DNA of 63,946 nucleotides, counting the filler, from Lenisia limosa (Eukaryota > Protista > Breviatea): the NCBI GenBank assembly GCA_001655205.1. It is 7 parts of 7 records of this genome, joined end to end, with 100 filler letters (N's around TTAATTAATTAA, not from the genome) between each part and the next. Parts side by side here need not be neighbours in the genome. Positions count along the whole stretch, not along the records: positions 19,375 to 34,789 come from LPNZ01008855.1; 6 more parts are not named here. One strand, 5' to 3'. The translations under genes were made by a program, and so were the position numbers. The notes under the pieces were generated by a model. The model ran no database searches. It saw only the letters and a program-made list of their open reading frames with translations, and was not told where the DNA came from. This document shows, in pieces, positions 19,375 through 34,789 of this stretch (positions within the stretch are counted from its first letter, which is position 1; every line of letters starts with the position of its first letter).

Positions 19375-19541
19375 GGAAATGCACAAAGCTCGGCGCAAGG
19401 CTGCAAAGTTGGTTAGTTGGTTACAAGGTTGCAGCGTTGCTTGCAGCCACATTGTGCAAGGAGCAAACAAAAGGGTCTTCCGAGAAATTTCGAGTTTTTT
19501 TTCTCGAATATTTAAGTCCCCAAAATACAATTTTCTTCATC

Positions 19542-20318
19542 ATGTCATCTAAAGTCGTTATGGAATCTGTTAAGTCACTCCTCGCCAGCGCCACCTCCGC
19601 CAAGAAGGCTATGATCGTTTGAGGCGGTTTTTGTTTTTGTGAAAGTAGTTGTTACTCCCCGAACTACTTTTGTTCCACATTACAATGGCTATACATAATT
19701 TTATGACTTGATATTGCAAGCTCCTTCAATTTCATAGCTTTCAAATTTCTGTTTTCTTACTCTTGCAGTTCTCCAAGAGCTACTGCCCCGTAAGTGGAGT
19801 TCTACTACATTTAAAAAATTGTAAAAGATGGCAGCTTTCGCTAACTTGCCATTTTTGCTTTGTCCTATTCTATTCTCTGACTTTTGTTTTTTTCTTTAGT
19901 TCTGCGACCGTGTTAAACAACTCTTCAAAACCGAAGGCATTGCCTTTAATGCTGTTGAGCTCGACAAAGAATCTAACGTGGGGTTTTGGAGCTTGCTAAT
20001 CAATTCGCTATTACTAATCATCATTTCCTTCTCTTACCCATTAGGGAGCCGACATGCAAGCCGCCCTCAAGGTTATGTCCGGCCAACGCACCGTACCCAA
20101 CATCTACATTGGGGACACCCACATTGTAGGCATGGGGATTGGCTTGTGTACTGCAATTCTCCTCTTGCGTTTTACGTGTGTCTATTATGTTTGCCTCATT
20201 CAAATCGCCTCTGTTCTTGCTAGTTAGGGGGCTGATTTCCTGATTGACCGAACAGGGTGGTTGCGACGATGCCTTTGCCAAGAAGGCCTCCTTCAAGGAC
20301 CTTATGGCTAAGCTTTAA
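19542..20318 (+). CDS. GRX: Dithiol glutaredoxin (CPFC), 5 exons
   Basis: MSSKVVMESVKSLLASATSAKKAMI|FSKSYCP|FCDRVKQLFKTEGIAFNAVELDKESN|GADMQAALKVMSGQRTVPNIYIGDTHI|GGCDDAFAKKASFKDLMAKL*. It has the CPFC, TVP and GGCDD motifs. Confidence 0.95.
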
Positions 20319-20451
20319 ATTTTTATCTTGTTTCTAATGTAGTTTCCCCTTTTTCCATCCTGTGACACAGAACATAGCCGAAAGTTATGTTATTTGAAGC
20401 CTTATGAATGGTGGATCATATAAAAATACATTTTTTGGACTTGTCCAGGAC

Positions 20452-23400
20452 TTAGAGGCCGAAATCATCCTTGGGAGTTCCGCAGCCGGAGAGCTTGAAC
20501 TTCTCAACAAGAACCGCGAGGGCCTCAGGCTCAACAAAGGCAGGGAGGTCTGGGGGGGGGGGGNNNNNNNNNNNNNNNNNNNNNNNNNNNNNNNNNNNNN
20601 NNNNNNNNNNNNNNNNNNNNNNNNNNNNNNNNNNNNNNNNNNNNNNNNNNNNNNNNNNNNNNNNNNNNNNNNNNNNNNNNNNNNNNNNNNNNNNNNNNNN
20701 NNNNNNNNNNNNNNNNNNNNNNNNNNNNNNNNNNNNNNNNNNNNNNNNNNNNNNNNNNNNNNNNNNTCGATCACCCAAACGTACCTGTAAGGCGTTAAAA
20801 AAGTAAGGGAAATGTGAAAAAATCCGACTTATTAACGGTCACAACCCAATCATAACGCTTAGAGCCGTCCCAAGCATACGACCCCCGAGGGGATCAAAGC
20901 TGGATGGACAGAGCGTGGACAGACCAGACTGTAGAGAAGAACCTCCACAGACAATATGGTGTCAAGCAAACTGTGACTATTCTAAACCATACTGATACTG
21001 AGCAAAAAAGTTGTAATGATACAAAAAAAAAGGGGGGGGGGGTTGGCTGGGCAAAACACAAAGCANNNNNNNNNNNNNNNNNNNNNNNNNNNNNNNNNNN
21101 NNNNNNNNNNNNNNNNNNNNNNNNNNNNNNNNNNNNNNNNNNNNNNNNNNNNNNNNNNNNNNNNNNNNNNNNNNNNNNNNNNNNNNNNNNNNTGAGGAGA
21201 ACAGCAACAGCCTTCTGCTCAAACCTGAGGAATGAAAAGTAGTTAATAATAAGGGAGAAGTGGGAGTAATAACGGAGAAGTGGGAGTAATAAGGGACAAG
21301 TGGAATATTATACGGTATGTTGAAAATGAAAATGAGTATAAATGATATTAATTAGGAAACAAAAACGGTATAATAACACTCATCCGGCCAAACTCTGGGT
21401 ACATACAGCCCCCAAAAGTGGCATACCAAGAAATAGCGTAGTTGATAGGCAAGTCGTTGAGAGGCGTATCAAGAGCCTCGGAGAGGGCGGAAGCAATCTT
21501 GATGGCGCCGATAGCATCATTGCATTGGCCAACCTGGAAAAGTGAGCAGCAAAGAAGAAAACGACATGAAAAATAACCTGGAACTCACGTCAAGGAGTCG
21601 AGGAATGCCTGCATCGGTAGTGCCCCAGTCGAAGTCGTTGATACGGAACTGTGCTGGTCAAAGAGGGCAAGAGGTCTGTACTCAAGGGACACACAACACC
21701 AATGCCATGCTCCATATTTGTCAACTTGAAGGGCGAAGCTCACCTTGCCACATCCGAGGGTGAGACACACATTGTCCTTGGGGAGAGAGCGGGCGAGGTC
21801 GTTGAAGTAGTTGCGGCCCACACCGGCACCGTCACAACCGCCGATCACCCAGAATTGCTTGATATCACCAGTCTTGATAGAGTTGATCACCTGGGGGGGG
21901 GGGGGGNNNNNNNNNNNNNNNNNNNNNNNNNNNNNNNNNNNNNNNNNNNNNNNNNNNNNNNNNNNNNNNNNNNNNNNNNNNNNNNNNNNNNNNNNNNNNN
22001 NNNNNNNNNNNNNNNNNNNNNNNNNNNNNNNNNNNNNNNNNNNNNNNNNNNNNNNNNNNNNNNNNNNNNNNNNNNNNNNNNNNNNNNNNNNNNNNGGTCT
22101 TGTGGCCGAATCCGACGGTGTGACCGAGACGCTTGACCTGGGTGTCTTCCTTGGTGAAGCCTGATGAGGCCCTATGCCCGTAAGCTGACGGAAGCTTCAA
22201 ATGGATATTCATAAATTTTCGAGTGACAAGAACCAAATGAACTTCTTGGCCAACAAGGGCGCTCAAAATACGAAGCAAAGGAGAATAGCGAAGAGTACAT
22301 GCTTTCATTATTCCATTCCATCGCAGTCCCGCCCACTTGGCGGATTCAATGAGGGCGTCGAAGTTTTCTCCGTCACCAAGATGCTTGACACCGGGCCATC
22401 CGACCTCGTGAAGAGTGAAGATGCGGTCCTGATATGTGAGCAGTGCATTCTTCATTATTTTGCTTAATGTTTAAGAAGATTACCTCATAGGAGGGACGGG
22501 GCTTGATGAGACAGTTGCTAGTCAGAACAACAGCTCCGGGGAACTCAGCAAAATCGGTACGCTGCTTCTGCCAGGCGGAGCCCCAATGTCCCTGCAGCGT
22601 GACACAAACAAAGCCACCATTAACGCGAGGGATTAACGTACCTTGAGGTGTTCGTACTTCTTCAGTTCAGGGTAGGAGTGCGCGGGGAGCATCTCACCGC
22701 TGGGAAGGGTGGAGTCAAAAAGAAAACGAAAATCAATTCCATTGAGAGGGGGGTAGGAATTTAGTATTTATCAGTTCAAGTGAGAATCGAAATAGTTTTT
22801 AACCAAAAATCACAACCCATGTTCCCAGGATGACACAATGCCAAATCCATGAAACAGTCAAGTTCCAAGACGCATACTGGGTGTAGACGTTAACGTCCTT
22901 GTCCTTAGTGGCCTCGAGAATGGCCTAAAATATTAGGGTGATGAGAGTATGACACAGAAGAGCAAGGCAAGCGGGAAAATGCCCAACCTTGAGGTCAACC
23001 ATGTCGTGGCCGGAGACGAGGATGCACTTGCCGGGAGCGGGTACAGTGGAGACCGGGGTGGGCTCGGGGGTGCCAAGAACCTGAACTAGTCAAAATAGAA
23101 CAGTCGCCTGGAATATAGACATGTGGCACGTGAAAAAGAAGAGTATCCGAGACGTACCTTATCGTGGGCGTCGGAGAGCATTTCCATGACGTGGAGGTTG
23201 CATTCGCCAACCTGCTCACTTAGACTCAGACTGGCAAAAGTGTTCGAACTCACTCCCAACAAAAATTCGCCCCCAACCACCCACCTTGAGAGCCTGGCCA
23301 AGAACGGCGTTGAGGTCTTCGGCAGCAGGGGCTGGGAATGTCAAAACAGAGCGGACCACTATGGAATTGTCCACTTCTACGACTCTATTTCTGAACTGCA

Positions 23401-24902
23401 AAAGAGCCTCTTACAAGCAAGGAAGTCCATAGTCTCGTGCATGAAGTCGTAGACCTTTTGGTCAGTGCTTCCGAGGTTCTGGGCGTGCTCGCAGTAGGCT
23501 GCTGTGCCCTGGGGGAGGGGGGGGGGTCAGAACGTGCAATACTAATTAGAATCTCAAACGACATAACAGCAAAAAACACAACCACCCCTCCCCAAAAAAA
23601 AAAAGAAGAAGGCCAAGCGCACCTTGAGTCCGTAAAGAATGAGCTCCTGGAGGCCAGCCATGACCTTCCCACTCTTCTTCTGGCGGACGGGAATGGAAAC
23701 CTTCTTACCCTGTCGTAATAAGAAAACATGAGTATTACAAAATTGGGGTCATGTCTAACCAACCTCCTCAACAAGGTCGAGGATAGAGTCAGTGGTGATA
23801 GAGCGCTTAGCGGGGGAGGAAGCATCAAGCATTTTTTCGTCAAGGCCGGCCTAGGATGTGAGAGGGGTAATGGCCATATTGGAGATGCCCCTTTGCACAC
23901 ACCTTCTTGAAGAGATCATGGGCCTTCTCACGGATCTCAAGACCCTCAGCGATGTAATCCTTCGATTGTGAGAGGCATTACGCCAGATGATAAGAATCGT
24001 ATATAACCCTGCACCAACCTTCATGCGTTCGTCGTCAAAGTTGACGTTAGTGATGGTGGAGAAAAGGGCCTAATATCGTGATAAATGTAAACTTAGAGAT
24101 GCCTTTTCCTCGGGCCAACCTTGAGTTGGAACTCGTCAACTTCCTTGTCGTGGATACCCTTGGCGGCAGCAGGGGCGGCATATTGTCCAATGCCAAAAAA
24201 AATCAAAAAAAAAAAAAAAATCAAACCAAAAGTCATTTTTGAAGGTTGAAGGATTCATTACTTTACAATGAGGTAGCAGAGAAAATTACTGTGGCGGAAG
24301 ATTGGGAATATGGAAAACAATGAATGCAACCCTCCGCACCCGTAGCCAACCAAGCTAATCGATGTAACAACAAAGTAGTGCGGAGGAAAAGGAAAAGGGA
24401 GCGTAGGGAAGAAAAAAATCCTCCAAGCCAAAAGTGGTAAACCCTCGTAAATACCTTTGGAAACATCAATAAGAAGGTCTTGAAGGGCAGCAACATCAGG
24501 AGTCTTGCCACAGTTTCCCTTCCAGATGCAACCCTAGTAAGGTTAATGCAATTTACCATCAGAGGAAACCTACAACGCCTTCATCAGTCTGCTCGCACTG
24601 CATACAGAACATGTTCGCTGAATTATGTGAAAAAAGCAACACCTTAAATTGTAAAAATACCTTGTATACAACATTTTATAAATAATGGGAGCAAAGAAAT
24701 TGCTTTCCTTCAACAGCAAAGCCGACAACCAAAAAAAATAAAAGTCAACGAGATTCCAACTAACGTTCGTTAGCCATGGTTACGCTTGCTGAAAAAGAGC
24801 GAACAACATTGGGGAGGATTCTACGGCCAACGGCCGACAGGGCACTCTGAAAAATACATAACTTCCATTGCACAATGGATTCCTTACCTGAAGGGACAAC
24901 AT
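20452..24902 (-). CDS. hcp: Hybrid-cluster protein (hydroxylamine/NO reductase) with an N-terminal presequence
   Basis: Spliced: MLSLQ|[27 protein letters not shown]|[15 protein letters not shown]|[21 protein letters not shown]. Later motifs: [77 protein letters not shown]...DDFGL*. N gaps hide some sequence. Confidence 0.95.
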
Positions 24903-25239
24903 TGTTACTTAATAACAAAGCGTCAAATATCTTGATTTCGGAGGAAATTTTCAATATATATATTACATTAGTTAAATTAGTAACAGTAGTTGAACAAAAA
25001 GTGCTGTTGCGCTTTTGAGCTGCTCTCCTTCTGTATATTTAGTTTCATATTTGTAAGCTCAAAAGATATTGGGTTTTGAATTACCAACGTAGGATAAACG
25101 AAAAACTGCTCTTCTCCTACCTTTGAATATTTGATAATTTCCCTGGATATGTTTAATTCAATTCTAGTTATAAGAAAGGAGATGTAATTTGGGTTGGATA
25201 GACATTGACAAATATTCGCCGCGCAGCCTTTCAACTCCA
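24903..25239. promoter_or_regulatory. Short intergenic region between divergent hcp and Atg22-like starts (possible bidirectional promoter)
   Basis: 337 bp, AT-rich, between two inferred ATGs on opposite strands. Positional inference only. Confidence 0.35.
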
Positions 25240-27800
25240 ATGACCTCTCGCTCCCGCATCCATCGGCATATGCGAAATGCCACAGAAGAAGAAAGAATCA
25301 AAACAAGGAAGGCTGAAGGTAAGCCTCCCTCCCGTTTTTCAACCTCTTTTCTTTTTATAGTAGTTAGGTAATCTTTCTCACTCACTGCATAGCTCATGGT
25401 TTTATCTGGTATGCGGTGGCCAGGAGCCCATATTACGTCACAATTTCGGTGATCCTCTCGGCGCTCCTCATTAAAATGGGTCAGTGGGAGTTCAGCGATG
25501 TCAAATCTTCTTGGTTCGGCGGAACAGGCAATCTGGCCTACTTCTGCCTGCTACCCTTCTTCCTTTCGTTCCTCTTATGATGTTCCAATTCACTGTACTA
25601 TATTTTTTTACTGATTTTTTGGTGTTTATTTTGTTATATATTTTTAAAAGGAGGTGAGAAGAGTCATAATTGTCCAGGAGCACCAAAGTCATTTCTGTCA
25701 TACATGGCCTCTTTAGCCGCTCTGCTCGCAGCCTTTTGTTCACCAGTATGCCATTTGAATAAATCATTTCCTAATGTTTCAGTTTCTTGGAGCCCTCAGT
25801 GACCACACTAACATGCGGCGGCGGCTGTTTGCTATCACCTCACTTTGTGGTGGCACGTCAGCAATATCGTACATGTTCCTCCCCCCACATGCCTGGATGA
25901 TGGCAGGCGGCGTTGTCATTATTGGCGCGTTCTGCTACGAAGCTTCCCTCGTCTTCATGTGCGTCGGAGGTTCACCACCAATTAGGCCATTATGGAGTGT
26001 CCTGGGAACTACGGGGTGTACCTTAGCTGCTATTGATGATTCAGATACGCGTATCTTCCTGAGATTACAGAAGGAGAAAAAGAAGCTGGCAAGGTGTCTA
26101 CTCAAAGCCAAGCATCGGGTAACACTGCCCAGGTACGAAACGGATTTGGTTGTTGTAAAAATGATGATACAAAGCTGCATTGGTACTTTTATTTAGACAA
26201 CCAACAATCGTTCACTCAGTAGATTATTGTCTTGACGCTTCAAGTTGTGATTTTGATTTATCTTGGAAAGTAAGCGCCCTTTGTTTTTCATATTCATATT
26301 ATCAACAATAACATCATTTCATTTGAAATCAATTCACCAAACAATTTACGACTGATTCACAACGACAGGGAATCGCAATTAGCGCTTCGATTTGCAACCG
26401 CAGGTGCAGGATGTAAGCGGTTCTCCTGTTACCCTGTCATTTCAAATGGCATCAGTTGTTACATTGTAGTGTGGTGGGTGATCTTCAGTTTGGTATCAGT
26501 GTCACTGCTGCAACCGCGAGAAGCATCACGGCCATGCCCTGCAACATCCAATGTATTTACGGTCGGCTTCAAGCAGATCTTCCGAAGTACATGCCTTGTG
26601 GCCCAATGCCATCCCCATGCCGGTAAGCGGTTGCTCTAATTTAGTGATAAAACTAATAGTGACAAAAAAAATCAAAATACCTTTTGTGTATGGTTCATTT
26701 TGAGTTGTTGATGTTGCAGGTCGAGTTCTTCTCTCAATGATGTTCTTTCATGATGCTACACTTGGTTGGATGGAACCTCTCTGAGTATTGGTACTGGATG
26801 GACTTAGATGCGTGAAATGGTTAAAGTTGATATATTTACGTTAGTAGCGCTGATAGTGAATCTTGGGGGTTGGCTTCGTGAAGTCATGGAGTTCAGCGAC
26901 CCTGTCATTGGAGCACTGATGTTAAGCACACAGGTCTTCGGTATCATCGGTAGGACTTGGTCTGAATCTGTTGTGCTTTTACGTTTTCAGGTGCGGTCAC
27001 ATTCTTTCAACTTGCGAAGAAGTTTGGAACAAAGAAGTCTATGTGTATCGCCCTCTTTACCTGGGTACGTAAACAGCGTCAACATCACTCCAGTAACTTC
27101 TTAGATGATAATTCTTCCTGTCAGTTTCTTCCACATGGATCCCGATAAGCCTGCTCGTGCGGTTATTATCCTCTTCATTCTTGGTTGGAGGCTCGTTGAT
27201 GGAAAAGCTATTTTCTGTATATTAGCCTCTTCTATGAGATTCTATTTACACTGTAGGCATGGCATTGGGAGGATGTATCACACTCTATCGCTCGTGGTTC
27301 AGCATTCTCATTCCTCAAGGCTTCGAGGCCGAAGTGTGTTATTTCCCTGTCATTTAATTCACTATCACAATATCAATGATGTTTGTTTCATCTAACTTCT
27401 TCAGTTCTTCGGGCTTTATAATTTGTCTTCGAAAGTGACGTCATGGTCGGGTCCCTTAGTGTTCGCTCTCATTGTGGATGTCACTGGTATGCTTTTTGGC
27501 TACTACAGAGTACCACTACTATTGAGTCACTTATAGTTCCGATCTCCGTAGGACTTTTTCTCTCTCTTCGCTAACCCCAATATCTCATAACTGTGATGAT
27601 GTGAACAGCTTCGGCCAAATACACCTTATTTTTGTATTTCTCATTTCCAAATAATATTATATCATACAGTTAACAACTTTTCTCATTTTTCTCAGGCGAA
27701 ATGCGATATGGCATGTTGGCAATGACACTTATTTTTGCTGCGTCTCTGACAGCAGCCTTGTTTGTCAACACTAGGAAGGGTGTTGAGCAAGCTGGGTTCA
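25240..27800 (+). CDS. Atg22/UMF1-like MFS transporter; a low-complexity tail may extend to a stop at ~29268
   Basis: Exons read HGFIWYAVARSPYYVTISVILSALL, FLGALSDHTNMRRRLF, WWVIFSLVSVSLLQPR, FFGLYNLSSKVTSWSGPLVFALIVDVTG and RYGMLAMTLIFAASLTAALFVNTRKG, following the Atg22-family motif order. The 3' end is uncertain. Confidence 0.75.
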
Positions 27801-27822
27801 GGAAAAATATTACAGTGAGGGG

Positions 27823-28002
27823 ATCTTACCATCTTATTATTCAGTGCCATCTTATCATTATCTTATCATTCAGTACCATCTTATCATCCAGAACCATCTT
27901 ACCATTCAGTACCATCTTATCATCCAGTACCATCTTACCATCTTATCATTCAACACCGTTTTACCATTCAGTATCATCCATCTTATCATTCAGTACCATC
28001 TT
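27823..28002. repeat. Degenerate 18-bp minisatellite (ATTCAGTACCATCTTATC), probably intronic
   Basis: About 10 imperfect tandem units, visible directly. Confidence 0.85.
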
Positions 28003-29739
28003 CGAGATATTCCCCGTGAAGACTTGGCCATCCACCTGGTTTCCTCTGACGGAATACGGGCCTTGGATTTAAGAATACCGGCAAGCTACCTCCAGCCTTC
28101 TGTCATCAGGTTTGTTCAGTTTTCTCTGCGCGCTTCACTCTTCCTGTGCTCTTTACACTTAGGTACCCCTGTTCGCACCCAGCCATTACGCCGGAGACCT
28201 CACCTGCTATGATGACTTTCCTCACTAACTTGGTATCCCCTGTCCCTGTCAAACGTGGGTACCTCGTGCTAGGACTAACAGTTTCACAAACGGGATTAAT
28301 ATTGTAACTTGTCACAATGAACTTGACATTTCACATTCACGTTGTAGGGGATGGCCATCAGCTTCAGGAGGTGAGGGCAAAGAACTTGTGTCAATGATGT
28401 CAATTCATGGATTTATGTCTCACACTCCAGACAACAATAGTCACCTTCCCTAAAAATACGCCCATTATCATCTCGCCCGTTATCATCAGACCCGTGGTTG
28501 TTGACAACCAGTCCCCACCTCCTGCATATTCCATTCATGAGAAGGAGCTTGGCTTACCGTTGGGGGGGGGGGTAAAACTTGCTTGAGCGCAATTGTCTTG
28601 GAATATCTCTATTCCTTCCAACGGCATGATCACTAATTGATTTCACTAGGTCATCTACACGCCTCCTTCCACAGTACCAGGGCATTATACAACAAGATCA
28701 GGCATGTCGCAGCATGAGCGGGGCCCTCAGACCACGGACACCACTGAAGGCCTCGATTATGACGTCTCCGAGAGCGGAGAACAACGTATGCTCGGAGAGC
28801 GATATTCCTGCACGCCATATCAGGAAACTCTGATTATTTTTAATCCGCAATAATGTGACCAGATTGGCTTTGACGAGGAACCCATAAGGTCTCATAGAAG
28901 GAGTCATTCGTTGCCCCCTGGCTGGCATGTGCTTTCCGGTCAGTGGCAGATGGAACTCAAAAAATGCTCTCTAATTAATAGTATGGTTATACCCTCATAA
29001 GTCACTACTATGGTGGTACTCTCATCTTACCAATACAGTTACTCTGGAAGAGAATTCAGTCCTATCCCCGTCCCCAGCGACTTCACCATCAGATTACATA
29101 GATGGTTTTTTCCACCACCCAAAAGTACCGGTGCCAGCTGAAGTGTCCGTGAGTATTGATGACAATGAATTTGAATCCCTCCACGTCAGCGACGAAGCCA
29201 TTGCGATTGAGATGGAAGATGAACTCTTTAGTGTTCCTCTCACGCCAACTTCAACTGCTTCGATTTAGGTTCTGTATTGTTATGTTTTGTTTATGTTTGT
29301 TTCTTTCTTCTAATGGTATTTGGTGGTTAAGACTTTAATGCACGTGTTTCTTTTATTTCTTTGTCAATTTAACAATTTCATCCTTCAAATTTCAAAATTG
29401 AATTTCTGAACCTTTTCACGTTCTTATTCTTATTCTTATTCCTATTATTTAGCTCAAGCCATGCGATCCAGCTAGCCACCATAAAGTGAATAATAATAAA
29501 AAAACCCCTATAACTACATGCTGTCAATCATAAGTTACGGCGGCGCATTTTGTATTGATTTTTTTTTTTTCAAACATTTTGTATAAGTTGTGTATAAGCT
29601 GGCATTAAACTCTGGTAGTAATATATTAATGAGTAGCTAAACTCACTAAACCGATTAAGTGTTATATTCTGTTTTACTTTGATTTCTCTCTGTCCTTCTA
29701 AGGGTAGTTGAGTTTTCATTTCCTTTCTAATCACGTTTA

Positions 29740-32700
29740 ATGGCTCGCAAACAATCAAAAAAGGGAACAGTTTCGCCAAAGCCGTCCAAGCGTCAGTCTT
29801 CTTCCTCTGATCGTCAACCCTCACCCCCTCCCCCTGCCAAAAAGCCTTGCAAGGAGAAAGAAGAATCCTCTGAACCCAATCAGAAGGTTGAAGAGTCCAC
29901 TGCCCAACCATCCACAAGCAACTTCCAAGAAGGTTTCCTCCCTATTGAAGAAGAAGATCACCACGAAGCTTTTCCAGCCTTTCCAGAAGAACCGTTGGGG
30001 GGTTTTTTTTAGACATTGAATTAAATAACTTGTATTTTTATAAGTTTGTATATTTGGGTTTCTCACATTCTTTGAATTATTATTAATTATTGTTGGACAA
30101 ATTTTGATGGCCTCAAACACAGTTATAAGCTAATGACCCAGAATGGAAGACTTATTCGGAGGGTCAGATATCCCCCCGCAGCTCCGTGCCCTTCTCGGCA
30201 ACCTGTCGTTCATGCAACCCGCTAATGTACCGGGTAGGACATGTGATTTACTCAGATAATAGTTGCATCGCTTTGTTTCTCTTTTGCTGATTGACATTTT
30301 GTAGGTAGAGAAATGTTCAAGCGCTGGCTAGCCAACCTTGAAGTTGGAAAGGACGTTTCAATCCAAAGTGACACTCTGTATGCAACATGGGGTATTTGTG
30401 TGCTGCAGATTTTCTTGAAATTCTGAGTCTTTCCAATTCAAATTAATGTAATTTTGTAATCTGACAGATTGTTAGTCATTCCTCTTGAGTATAAACACTG
30501 ATGCTATTGGGGGTGGGGAATTGGGCACTCAGGAACAGCAGTGCAAAAAGATCAGCAATTCGAAACCATCTCACAAACTTAGGAATGAGCTCTGCAACCA
30601 TCTTTTGATGGCGAGTGACGAGAGCATGATGGGGTTCGACCTTGATGAATTCATCCCTCGTCTCGTGGCCCTTGTCAGATCCTCTATCGATATCGGAAGT
30701 ACGAGGCTATTCTGCCATCTAATCATTTTCAATTTTACATCTTTGATATCACTTTGTGTTTTTATGATCTAGTACTTGCCTGCCAAGCCCTCGCTAACAT
30801 TCTGAGCATCTTCCCTGAAGCAAACAGATCTATGTTGGTGTGGGTCAACTCGTTAACTTGATTTGACAGACTAAGTGAATTGTTATTGGTTATTTGAACA
30901 TGCCAATGTGAACTTTTTGACCGTGCAGGGAGCGTCATGGTGCAGTAGACGCTTTGGTCGAGAAAATCGAAACCATCGAATCGTCGGATATCACTGAAAT
31001 CGCTCTTTCGGTGGGTGGAGTCCAGGACTTGGGAGGGTAAGATTGACTGGTGTTTCATGAGCAAGATAGCGCGCTGATGATCTGACCCCCTAGGCCCTCG
31101 AGAAGATATCACAAACTCGGCCCAAAGCAGTGGTCAGCTCCGGTGGCCTTGGTGCTTGCCTCCAGTTCCTCGACTTCTTCCCCACTTGTAGGCAAAAAAG
31201 GTCTTCACGTAGCTCGCATTTCCACATTCGCTTGACAGCTCTTCAGGTGTGCAACTGTCCATAGCCCACATTGCCTGCAACTGCTGCTCTGCCGTGGAGC
31301 CCTCAAAATTGGGTAGTGACCAAGCCATCACCGTTGCCCCAGGTACGATGGAATATAATGTCTGTTGTAAACATGGATTAAGGCTATCAAGATATTCTTT
31401 TGCTCAGTCCCCTCCCCTTAGTATTTAACGTTCTCCTGACCCACTCTGACAAACGTCTTGTTGACCTTACTATTTCGGCCCTTCTGAAGTTGGCCAAAGC
31501 TGCAAGAAAAGGTTGGAGCCGAATTATCGTTACATCTGTGATCCCAGTACTTCAGTCTCATGTTTTTTCTCTTTGTTGGTTTCGCCCCATTGACTTCTCA
31601 GTTGAGGACCACAAGTTTGCCACATCTATTTTCCATGACTCCAGTGTGGCTGACACCATTTTCGGATTTGTGACCTCCCGTCCTGAGGAATTCACGTGAG
31701 GGGGGGGGGGTGCATTGGTCATTCATCAGAATTGCACTGATATAACTTTTGTTTGTATGATGGGGAGACATGCAGGAAGCTCGTCTGCAGTTATAATCCA
31801 AATATTTGTGAAATAACATCATCAAAAGCCGTATGGCGTTAACTGTATTGATCAGATTTACGTGTGTCACTCTATTCTGACGTAACAGAGCCGACCGGTA
31901 TGAAACAGTGCTCGAGTTAGCAGCTGAGATGCTTATGGCCTCTCCAGAGCTTGCCGCCGCACAGTTGGATCAGGATCTTTCCAAGGTGGCTGTCGAGCTG
32001 GTTTCCGCCGCCGCGGCTGGTGATTGGGATGTCCTTGATAAACATCGTTGTTTTTGATACAATGTTGGTAATAGTACCTGTTTGATGCTCCTTAGATTCC
32101 AACTCCACTATCGTTGTTCCCACTCTAAGTCTCCTTTCGGCCCTTATTCCCGAGGTAGGCTGTTTTAGGTTAATCGGTATGGGTTAAAAAGGCTGGAAAA
32201 TCCGTTTTCGCTTCACCCTTTGATTCATTCCTCATTTCCAAGGTACCAAAGGCTGGACTCGACACTCATGACCCTTCTACCCCTCAACCAGGTTCGAGTT
32301 GTCATACGATATCTCACTGGTCAGACTTTGAACTGAGATATATTGCTTGAGTAATTGCGTACCATATTTTCTTTTGCTACGAATATCACAGTTAATTTTG
32401 GCGTTTCTAATTTCACAGAATCTTCGGCTCCAGCTGACGCTCCCGAAAAGGAGAAGTCTGGCCCTAATGAAGGTATCAAAATCTGCACGAAATATCATTG
32501 GTCTTTCGCATGGGATGAGAATATTTTCTACCGCTTTTCTGCCACTTTTCATCTGCAACTGTTGCAGCACTCATGTTGTAGAAGAATCATCCGCCCGCGT
32601 TAATTTGTTAGAACGCCTCTCAGGACTGGAAGGTTTGCCATCCCCACCAAAGACTGAAATTTCCTCGATGCATGTCGCTGTTCACTGTCGTTTTGGACTG

Positions 32701-34789
32701 ATGAAACCCTAGTTAATTTTATTGAGTCGATGCTGCTAATGGACAGTAGATTTTCATTACTCCTTTAGAAGCAATACAAGAGGAGCTCAAAGAAGAGGAA
32801 GGGCATTCCGAAGACCTCAGCGGTGGGTTCATTGTGCCGTTATTGTTAATTTTGTTGCTGTAGAGCATGCAATTGATATCCTGGCCGTTTGTCTTGTCCT
32901 ATCTATTTCTTATCCACATTTATTGCTTATGATTCAGACGTAAATGACGAAATGGAGGACGATGAGGAGGAGGAGCATGACGACGACCACGAAGAAATGG
33001 ACTTTGTTGACGAGGAAAACAAATTCGTGGGAAGGGGACGATGGATGAGCAAATATCGTTAATTTAATATCGCGTAAGATGCACGAAATGAATATTCGCT
33101 TTTAGTGGTTTTGTATCCCAACAGTGTAGCAATGGGACGAGGAAGACGATGAAGACAATGATGAAGGGGACGCATTTGCTCAGAGTCTTCTGTCCCGTCT
33201 TGGCATCAATCTCAACAATCGCAAGGTCAATGAAGGACCCTCAAAAGAGGTCCGTCCTTGTTCCTTCAGACCTATCCCCGATAACCCCATTTTAACCCTN
33301 NNNNNNNNNNNNNNNNNNNNNNNNNNNNNNNNNNNNNNNNNNNNNNNNNNNNNNNNNNNNNNNNNNNNNNNNNNNNNNNNNNNNNNNNNNNNNNNNNNNN
33401 NNNNNNNNNNNNNNNNNNNNNNNNNNNNNNNNNNNNNNNNNNTTTCTCTCTTCTTACTGCATTCAAAAACAGTATCATCCCATGCCGCACAATATCTCAC
33501 GCACGTGACCACATAGGTGTTAGCTCGACGCCTAGTCAGCATGCAGGTGAGAGCAGCTGCATTGGAGGCTCAACGCGAGGCCTTCAGCAGCCTGGCCACC
33601 GCAGTTATTGAACCGTTGTCGCATCTGGCCACACATGTCACCTCCGAGGACCTGTCTCAGAAGGTTGGCCGTCCGTGTGACTCTCAAAACATCCGAAGAC
33701 TCTTACCTCCTCCCCCAGGCGAGTGTAATTCTGGACAAGATCTGCTACTATGCCGACAAGGACCTCGCGGACGTTTTACTGAAGTCGTCAATCCTGTGTT
33801 CATGCCTGGCGTCTCTTCTGTCATCTCGTGACCTCATTCGTCGCGCTCTCGGTACGCTCCAATCAAATTCATGTTCCGGTAGAAGCGCTGTAGAGTATCT
33901 ATATCGAATTAGGACGTTTCTTACAACTTAGGACTGCATTCATGCTTCACCCTCTTCGCCCAACTCACTACCAACGCCCACGAGGCCTTCTCAAAACACG
34001 GTATTTGGGTGTCAAAACCGGGCTGTTTGACGAGGTTTTCTGCATGTTAATGTTTGTGGCTTTAACTGACCTTTAAGGTATTCCCCATTGGGTGGCTAAA
34101 TTGGCCAATCCGGGCGCCCAATCCACTTCCACTGTGGGAGGGGGGGGGGCCAGAGTATTGTTGAGGATTTATCATGCATTTTTCTTTGAATTGCCATGGA
34201 TTTGAGGATTAATGGACCAGACTCCCAAGAAGCCAGCAAGCAAGCCTGCACCACGCACACCGTCCTGCTTTACCCCCGACTTCCACCCCAACAAAAGGTG
34301 GCCATCTCGAATACAATGTTTCTGCATTATTTTATTCCTGTACAATTACATCCCTAGATTTCTATTTATTTCTCTTGTTCAAATAAAAAAACTACATCCG
34401 AAAACGATTGGATTTCCTGGTTGACCCGACAGTGCAAGCCTGGCCTCGTGGGTCAAGAAGAAGGCGAGCCAACTTGCGGCGATAATGGAGCCGTCGGCTA
34501 CTGAGGATTCCGAGATCGTTAGATCGTTCAAGACCAGCATTGAGACCCTCAACACAGCTCAGGATAGGGAACAGGCTCAGGCGGCCCTGAAGGTTTGCCC
34601 TTTTGGTTCTGAACCCACGCCATGGGAACTAACTTTGTAGGAGTTGGCCAATATCATGTCGCACGACAGTGTGAGTGAGTTTGAAGTAGCGGAGTCAGGC
34701 GTGATTGAGAGTCTTGCCGCCTACCTGGGAGACAACACCGATGAAGCACGAAGATGCCTGAGGCTCACAGACTTCCTTGACGCCTTCGC
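29740..34789 (+). CDS. Ufd4/TRIP12/UPL3-type HECT E3 ligase, N-terminal ARM region; truncated at the linker, HECT domain not seen
   Basis: MARKQSKK... low-complexity N-terminus, then ELCNHLLMASDESMMGFDLDEFIPRLVALV, LACQALANILSIFP, GAVDALVEKIETIE, ALEKISQ....AVVSSGGLGACLQFLDFF and SVSEFEVAESGVIESLAAYL. Confidence 0.85.

Follow-up and report, generated by a model that had tools for sequence, protein, structure and literature searches.

The breviate Lenisia limosa carries a nuclear, intron-rich and expressed eukaryotic gene for the hybrid-cluster protein (HCP). With moderate confidence, and judging chiefly from the sequence ahead of its bacterial-type start, we propose that this gene encodes a precursor with a short presequence of the R-3 type, which would be imported into the hydrogenosome-like mitochondrion-related organelle (MRO), and that the public protein model is truncated at its 5' end. 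The gene lies on the minus strand of a 63,946-nucleotide stretch of Lenisia DNA (the window; seven joined parts of GenBank assembly GCA_001655205.1), within the part taken from LPNZ01008855.1 (positions 19,375 to 34,789), and all positions given are those of the window. Arrows within motifs mark cleavage or splice sites.

Identity and structure of the Lenisia HCP gene

A tblastn search with E. coli K-12 Hcp as query recovered matches resembling HCP between 24612 and about 20460, divided among many small exons and interrupted by three N-gaps. The gene comprises more than 20 small exons, ends with a TAA stop codon at 20454-20452 on the minus strand, and is cut in the window by N-gaps at 21907-22095, 21066-21192 and 20564-20766. 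The features that define the body of the gene are:

20452-24902, minus strand: coding region of Lenisia limosa HCP (tblastn, exact spliced match, PF03063, matches to HCPs in the PDB)
24574-24617, minus strand: exon 3, with the ATG of MFCMQC at 24612-24610 (Met35) and the first Cys of the N-terminal Fe-S motif
24194-24454, minus strand: GT..TG intron of 261 nt (RNA contig joint ...CCAAAG↓GCATTGG...; the alignment of the public protein requires the same junction)

The exons encode exactly the 555-residue EukProt protein EP01086_Lenisia_limosa_P003625 (hereafter P0003), which contains PF03063, and an exact-match spliced alignment placed residues 1-498 of P0003, with 20 introns, on a gap-free ENA contig (L002). 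When compared with the PDB by phmmer, residues 7-553 matched HCP/hydroxylamine reductase structures with E-values from 3e-146 to 1e-124 (7de4, 3e-146; 1e2u and 1gn9, 1e-125). The N-terminal four-Cys motif, read from P0003 in exons 3-4, has the spacing C-x2-C-x8-C-x5-C, which we take to be that of a class-I HCP, and the motifs SGHD, THGEMLP, TSNC, GGCDGA, LGCGK, GQCNDA and SWFEQKA align with E. coli Hcp. These motifs carry the ligands of the hybrid cluster (His, Glu, Cys). With PF03063, an E-value of 3e-146 to solved structures and all visible cluster-ligand motifs conserved, the identification of the gene as an HCP, made in an earlier note from the DNA alone, is confirmed. A 111-residue query read through exon, intron and exon matched, apart from a spurious hit, nothing but P0001, an ORF call from this same genome. 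Exon 3 opens with CGAACATGTTCTGTATGCAGTGC, and the alignment to residue 1 of E. coli Hcp begins in this exon.

Two details of the assembly deserve mention. The 261-nt intron at 24194-24454 has a canonical GT donor and a 3' end of TG, not AG, following a T16-GA-T8 tract; the TG at 24194 could be a true non-canonical acceptor, or else the window, L002 and the DNA contig share an assembly error linked to the homopolymer. Each N-gap in the gene is flanked on one side by a poly-C run, and in L002, which spans the first two gaps (21907-22095 and 21066-21192), two introns end there in long C runs (CCCCCCCCCCCCCAG). It was probably these long C runs that broke the original assembly at the gaps.

Proposed mini-exons upstream of the bacterial-type start

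The earlier note had claimed that two extra exons upstream of MFCMQC splice in phase onto the HCP core, and on the minus strand the coordinates, phases and peptide of this arrangement proved exact:

24954-24964, minus strand: TATA-like run ATATATATAT, 52-62 nt upstream of the first ATG (ATG1), read directly
24888-24902, minus strand: proposed coding part of exon 1, 15 nt, ATGTTGTCCCTTCAG, from the sequence; ATG at 24902-24900 and four further codons (MLSLQ)
24847-24887, minus strand: proposed intron 1, 41 nt, CAG↓GTAAGG...TTTTTCAG↓A, GC 0.34, from splice position weight matrices (PWMs)
24765-24846, minus strand: exon 2, 82 nt, from the sequence and, from 24795 downstream, from RNA
24796-24846, minus strand: the first 51 nt of exon 2 (codons S6-S22), with an uninterrupted frame and GC 0.59; positively charged, amphipathic core of the putative presequence
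24765-24795, minus strand: 3' part of exon 2 (F23 SASVT M29 ANE and 1 nt), RNA-confirmed
24618-24764, minus strand: intron 2, 147 nt, GTTAGT...AATTCAG, RNA joint 24617->24765

When these exons are joined the frame is continuous through a split Pro codon and N into MFCMQC, giving a 34-residue extension beyond residue 1 of the bacterial HCPs, and an in-frame TAA stands 9 nt upstream of ATG1 (24902). The 3' part of exon 2 contains both the predicted cleavage site (F23↓S24) and an internal start codon, the ATG of Met29 at 24777-24775. P0003 begins MANEPNMFCMQC, which is Met29 of the leader model, and is without the 28 upstream residues; since it starts at this internal Met (MANEPN...), the leader is hidden from the public protein model.

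The transcript evidence comes from a single study, which supplied a polyA RNA run and a DNA run whose contigs were placed on 22137-26500. An RNA contig of 1637 nt (depth 94) contains 15 listed joints, each readable as GT..AG on the minus strand, among them 24617->24765, which establishes intron 2, the donor of exon 2 and exon 2 itself at least from 24795. Expression of the gene and removal of intron 2 and of about 15 other introns are thus directly observed. This contig stops at 24795, 31 nt into exon 2 and at the first base of the Phe23 codon, and among the contigs of the run none lies over 24796-25202, so that exon 1, intron 1 and the part of exon 2 upstream of 24795 are uncovered. At its other end the contig breaks off about 52 nt before reaching the stop codon (in record coordinates), and because this 3' end falls inside the last coding exon, its ends are assembly breaks and not transcript ends. 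The end at 24795 indeed looks like a break in the assembly graph. It falls 31 nt, or one assembler word, beyond the exon 2-exon 3 junction and beside the predicted cleavage site. None of five sampled words from 24796-24902 was found in the RNA run, a weak test in which about 1-2 words would be expected inside exon 2, about a quarter of the words in this interval falling wholly within that exon. A search of metagenome contigs with the confirmed exon 2-exon 3 junction gave no match. Of the two introns in the three-exon leader put forward by the earlier note, the RNA therefore bears out one, intron 2, through a joint in the depth-94 contig, while exon 1 and intron 1 lie beyond the contig end at 24795.

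P0003 itself is a Trinity/TransDecoder ORF labelled 'complete' with its start at Met29. When an ORF is 5'-partial, TransDecoder may shorten it to begin at a Met further downstream, and the label therefore does not settle where the protein starts.

For intron 1 we turned to PWMs built from the 20 introns and 19 GT..AG acceptors of this same HCP gene. The donor, with a score of 6.9, lies in the middle of the range of the gene's 20 introns and ranks among the top 6% of GT sites overall. The acceptor is poorer: its score of -0.6 falls short of every one of the 19 GT..AG acceptors, which score 3.5-12.3. The branch-site match, GTTAT, does not reach the quality of the usual CTCAC/TTGAC, and the length of 41 nt compares with 40 nt for the shortest confirmed intron of the gene. 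An alternative 3' splice site inside exon 2, TTTTTCAG↓CAAGCG, is not the form seen in RNA, the contig running 7 nt further with no loose end.

Base composition along this region follows the proposed structure. GC is 0.24 in the 100 nt upstream of ATG1, 0.47 in exon 1, 0.34 in intron 1 and 0.59 in the 51-nt 5' part of exon 2; the parts of the gene mapped by the P0003 alignment have values of 0.46-0.66 in exons and 0.31-0.52 in introns. This is the pattern expected of a promoter, exon, intron and exon in succession, and it would be unexpected if transcription began near 24795. At the thresholds used, a single in-frame ATG model, that starting at 24902, is possible in the genuine 405 nt upstream. 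Among 2000 dinucleotide shuffles of these 405 nt, 23% allow some model and 15% an extension of at least 15 residues, and a single shuffle gives an extension resembling a mitochondrial targeting sequence (MTS; no acidic residue in 28, at least 3 basic residues, amphipathic moment of at least 0.8), a figure that is indicative only, because these thresholds were chosen after seeing the data.

The TATA-like run at 24954-24964 is a possible core promoter, and as read from the sequence no ATG lies between it and ATG1. The transcription unit would most likely start some 25-60 nt upstream of the ATG at 24902. Low-depth RNA contigs (depth about 0.5-4) at 25203-26500 belong to a neighbouring transcribed gene, which begins about 300 nt upstream of ATG1 of the HCP gene. 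With this neighbour occupying the sequence from 25203, any HCP promoter would have to lie within 24903-25200.

A leader with the properties of a matrix presequence

The 34-residue leader contains three Arg, no Lys or Asp, and a single Glu at residue 32, which is its first acidic residue, giving a net charge of +3 over the first 24 residues. Its maximal amphipathic moment over 11 residues is 0.86, a value reached by 55 of 5000 shuffles, and it includes the processing motif R21-S22-F23↓S24-A25, which fits R-x-(F/Y/L)↓(S/A). The earlier note had described a leader rich in Ser, Leu and Arg, free of acidic residues until its end, with the R-x-F↓S motif. In composition, charge, amphipathicity and motif the predicted peptide is that of a matrix presequence. 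A signal peptide was also considered for the leader and rejected, there being no long hydrophobic core. The broader claim, that the leader is of the presequence type, is upheld by its charge, amphipathicity and motif and by similar leaders on other eukaryotic HCPs (see below), and is qualified by the splice of exon 1 to exon 2, which falls outside the RNA.

The end of the RNA contig at 24795 lends itself to a different account, the chief rival of this reading, which we consider possible but on balance unlikely. The leader may stand outside the abundant mRNA, either because transcription begins in the 3' part of exon 2 or slightly ahead of it, or because exon 1 and intron 1 are untranslated or unspliced; translation would then begin at Met29 (MANEPN) or Met35 (MFCMQC), HCP would be cytosolic, and the resemblance to a presequence would be a coincidence or a relic. 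That the depth-94 contig ends 18 nt upstream of the ATG of Met29, with the next RNA contig upstream only at 25203, is what such an account predicts, and it gains further from the five sampled words missing from the RNA run (weak as that test is), from the public ORF labelled complete at Met29, from the poor PWM score of the intron 1 acceptor, and from the position of Met29 in ACCATGG, a context close to the optimal eukaryotic one. The contig, however, breaks off before the stop codon as well, which deprives its ends of meaning as transcript ends. Moreover, the 51 nt upstream of 24795 are exon-like in GC against the AT-rich sequence further upstream, and their reading frame stays open, specifying an MTS-like peptide of the kind that shuffling reproduced once in 2000 attempts, with an R-x-F↓S-A motif common to other eukaryotic HCP leaders. 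A putative cytosolic isoform from the internal Met29 is compatible with the data, and it is possible that organellar and cytosolic forms of HCP occur as a mixture.

It is also conceivable that the leader is translated without directing import into the MRO matrix, as a non-functional extension, a signal for a membrane or another compartment, or a regulatory N-terminal tail. The shortness of the extension would agree with this, and its hydrophobic stretch LSLQSALSAV is open to other readings, but the leader has no hydrophobic core of the length that a signal peptide or an anchor requires, its Arg residues are distributed over a single face of an amphipathic helix, and a classical R-3 cleavage motif follows, as it does in the HCP leaders of other eukaryotes. 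We consider this reading very improbable.

If the leader acts as a presequence, the pathway could be as follows. Two mini-exons would be spliced onto a bacterial-type HCP core, adding the 34-residue N-terminal extension and giving a protein of 583 residues; about 23 residues of the extension would form the presequence, an amphipathic helix rich in Arg, Ser, Leu and Ala that ends R-S-F↓S-A. This would be recognised by the TOM/TIM-type import machinery of the hydrogenosome-like MRO and removed by the processing peptidase, leaving about 11 residues ahead of MFCMQC. Inside the organelle, HCP may reduce NO or hydroxylamine, or remove peroxide, alongside Fe-S enzymes sensitive to oxygen and NO. P003625 would start at Met29 only because the assembled transcript is without its 5' end, and leaky scanning or a downstream transcription start might yield a cytosolic form from Met29.

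Relatives and origin of the Lenisia HCP

The best matches of P0003 are 50-55% identical and mostly bacterial, including Planctomycetota and other PVC lineages; among them there is no HCP from another breviate. Transcript-derived HCPs of 595-622 residues also appear among the matches of P0003 and of its best match, P0004, two of them being from Echinamoeba exundans (P0129) and Flabellula baltica (P0149). These eukaryotic HCPs have basic N-terminal extensions of 38-69 residues in which Ser, Thr and Ala are abundant, and a motif R-x-[FYLI]↓[SAH] occurs 7-39 residues before the conserved start in 10 of the 11 eukaryotic HCPs with extensions. In one of these leaders the site reads RKF↓SAS, compared with RSF↓SAS in Lenisia. 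The basic extensions and the motif in 10 of 11 show that organelle-type leaders recur among eukaryotic HCPs, a pattern which the Lenisia leader fits, although its predicted length (about 23 + 11 residues) is shorter than that of other eukaryotic HCP leaders.

In a tree of 60 HCP sequences, inferred under LG+C20 with a careful search, the extension-bearing eukaryotic proteins form a clade of 14 (96/91) together with three shorter, probably truncated entries. The Lenisia HCP groups instead with two sequences from uncultured bacteria, P0007 and P0014 (97/94), on a very long branch (1.45). Constraining Lenisia into the eukaryote clade lowers the log-likelihood by 8.0 and is not rejected (p-AU 0.265). 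P0014 lies on its contig (L005) in a dense gene neighbourhood of bacterial type. Both P0014 and P0007 (the latter on L006) have a short extension of 10 residues (M.L..FADAE) before MFCYQC. The named genomes nearest to P0014 share 50-61% identity with it (best 80 in a species-representative set), and they belong to Planctomycetota, Verrucomicrobiota, Melainabacteria, Methylococcales, Anoxychlamydiales and others. The phylogeny, which the earlier note had hoped would find the donor lineage, thus sets Lenisia beside two bacterial sequences with support of 97/94 and names no donor, the nearest relatives being 50-61% identical across several phyla. The Lenisia gene might represent a separate and relatively recent bacterial acquisition, in which two new mini-exons arose upstream of a retained bacterial start and Met1 and Met29 would direct the protein to the MRO and the cytosol, respectively. 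If so, it would capture a laterally acquired gene in the course of gaining its presequence; we think this scenario doubtful.

Comparison with known organellar HCPs

HCP has been found in mitochondria and related organelles before. In Acanthamoeba castellanii the protein (ACANB09472) is mitochondrial, as seen by microscopy of the HA-tagged protein, and is induced under anoxia (Cell 2026, PMC13632651), and the same work reports HCP homologs with predicted mitochondrial localisation across diverse eukaryotes (PMC13632651). HCP is also listed among the hydrogenosomal Fe-containing proteins of Trichomonas vaginalis (PMC3669245). Breviates, including Lenisia, are described as having MROs whose proteins carry N-terminal targeting sequences, and the breviate MRO proteomes were predicted from transcriptome ORFs with targeting sequences; HCP is not mentioned in that preprint (bioRxiv 10.64898/2026.01.29.702055).

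Against these systems the Lenisia protein can be placed as follows. The Acanthamoeba HCP resides in an aerobic mitochondrion and was localised by microscopy, whereas that of Lenisia is predicted to reside in a hydrogenosome-like MRO. T. vaginalis resembles Lenisia in having HCP in an anaerobic organelle derived from the mitochondrion (as predicted for Lenisia), but belongs to a different eukaryotic supergroup, and the comparison is one of descriptions. Trichomonas presequences are typically much shorter. Comparable leaders are found on the HCPs of the Tubulinea amoebae E. exundans and F. baltica (P0129, P0149) and of related transcripts (P0004, P0031, P0125-P0127, P0131, P0185 and P0188), which belong to the same HCP subfamily as the Lenisia protein (53% identity to P0004 and 52% to P0031) and, like it, have R-x-[FYL]↓[SA] shortly before a conserved M-x-C-x-Q-C start. 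Their extensions are 38-69 residues long compared with 34 in Lenisia, where the leader is split over two mini-exons; the other proteins are known here from transcripts. The bacterial class-I HCPs (1e2u, 1gn9) are of the same fold family and have the same C-x2-C-x8-C-x5-C spacing as Lenisia, and E. coli Hcp (7de4) represents the HCP class with longer Cys spacing. The motifs GHD, HGEM, SNC, GGCDG, GCGK, GQCND and WFEQK are kept between the bacterial proteins and Lenisia; bacterial HCPs start at MFC.QC, whereas the Lenisia gene encodes 34 further residues in front of this point and is interrupted by more than 20 spliceosomal introns.

Since HCP in mitochondria and hydrogenosomes is already established, the gain here is incremental. 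If the leader is used, the Lenisia organelle would hold an Fe-S enzyme detoxifying NO, hydroxylamine or peroxide that the breviate MRO preprint does not mention, and the public Lenisia protein set would carry a 5'-truncated model that conceals a targeting signal. The 2026 Acanthamoeba work raised the question of whether eukaryotes had organellar HCP from the beginning or acquired it repeatedly, and the gene would add a data point from a breviate, within Obazoa, to that question. There is a practical warning as well: where a presequence sits on a very small 5' exon, an MRO inventory drawn from the ORFs of a transcriptome misses it.

Just downstream of the HCP stop codon, reading by eye and the ORF list point to a convergent, intron-containing glutaredoxin-like gene on the plus strand, at about 19542-20320, with the pieces MSSKVV..., ..FSKSYCP.., ..TVPNIYIGDTHI.. 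and GGCDDAFAKKASFKD.
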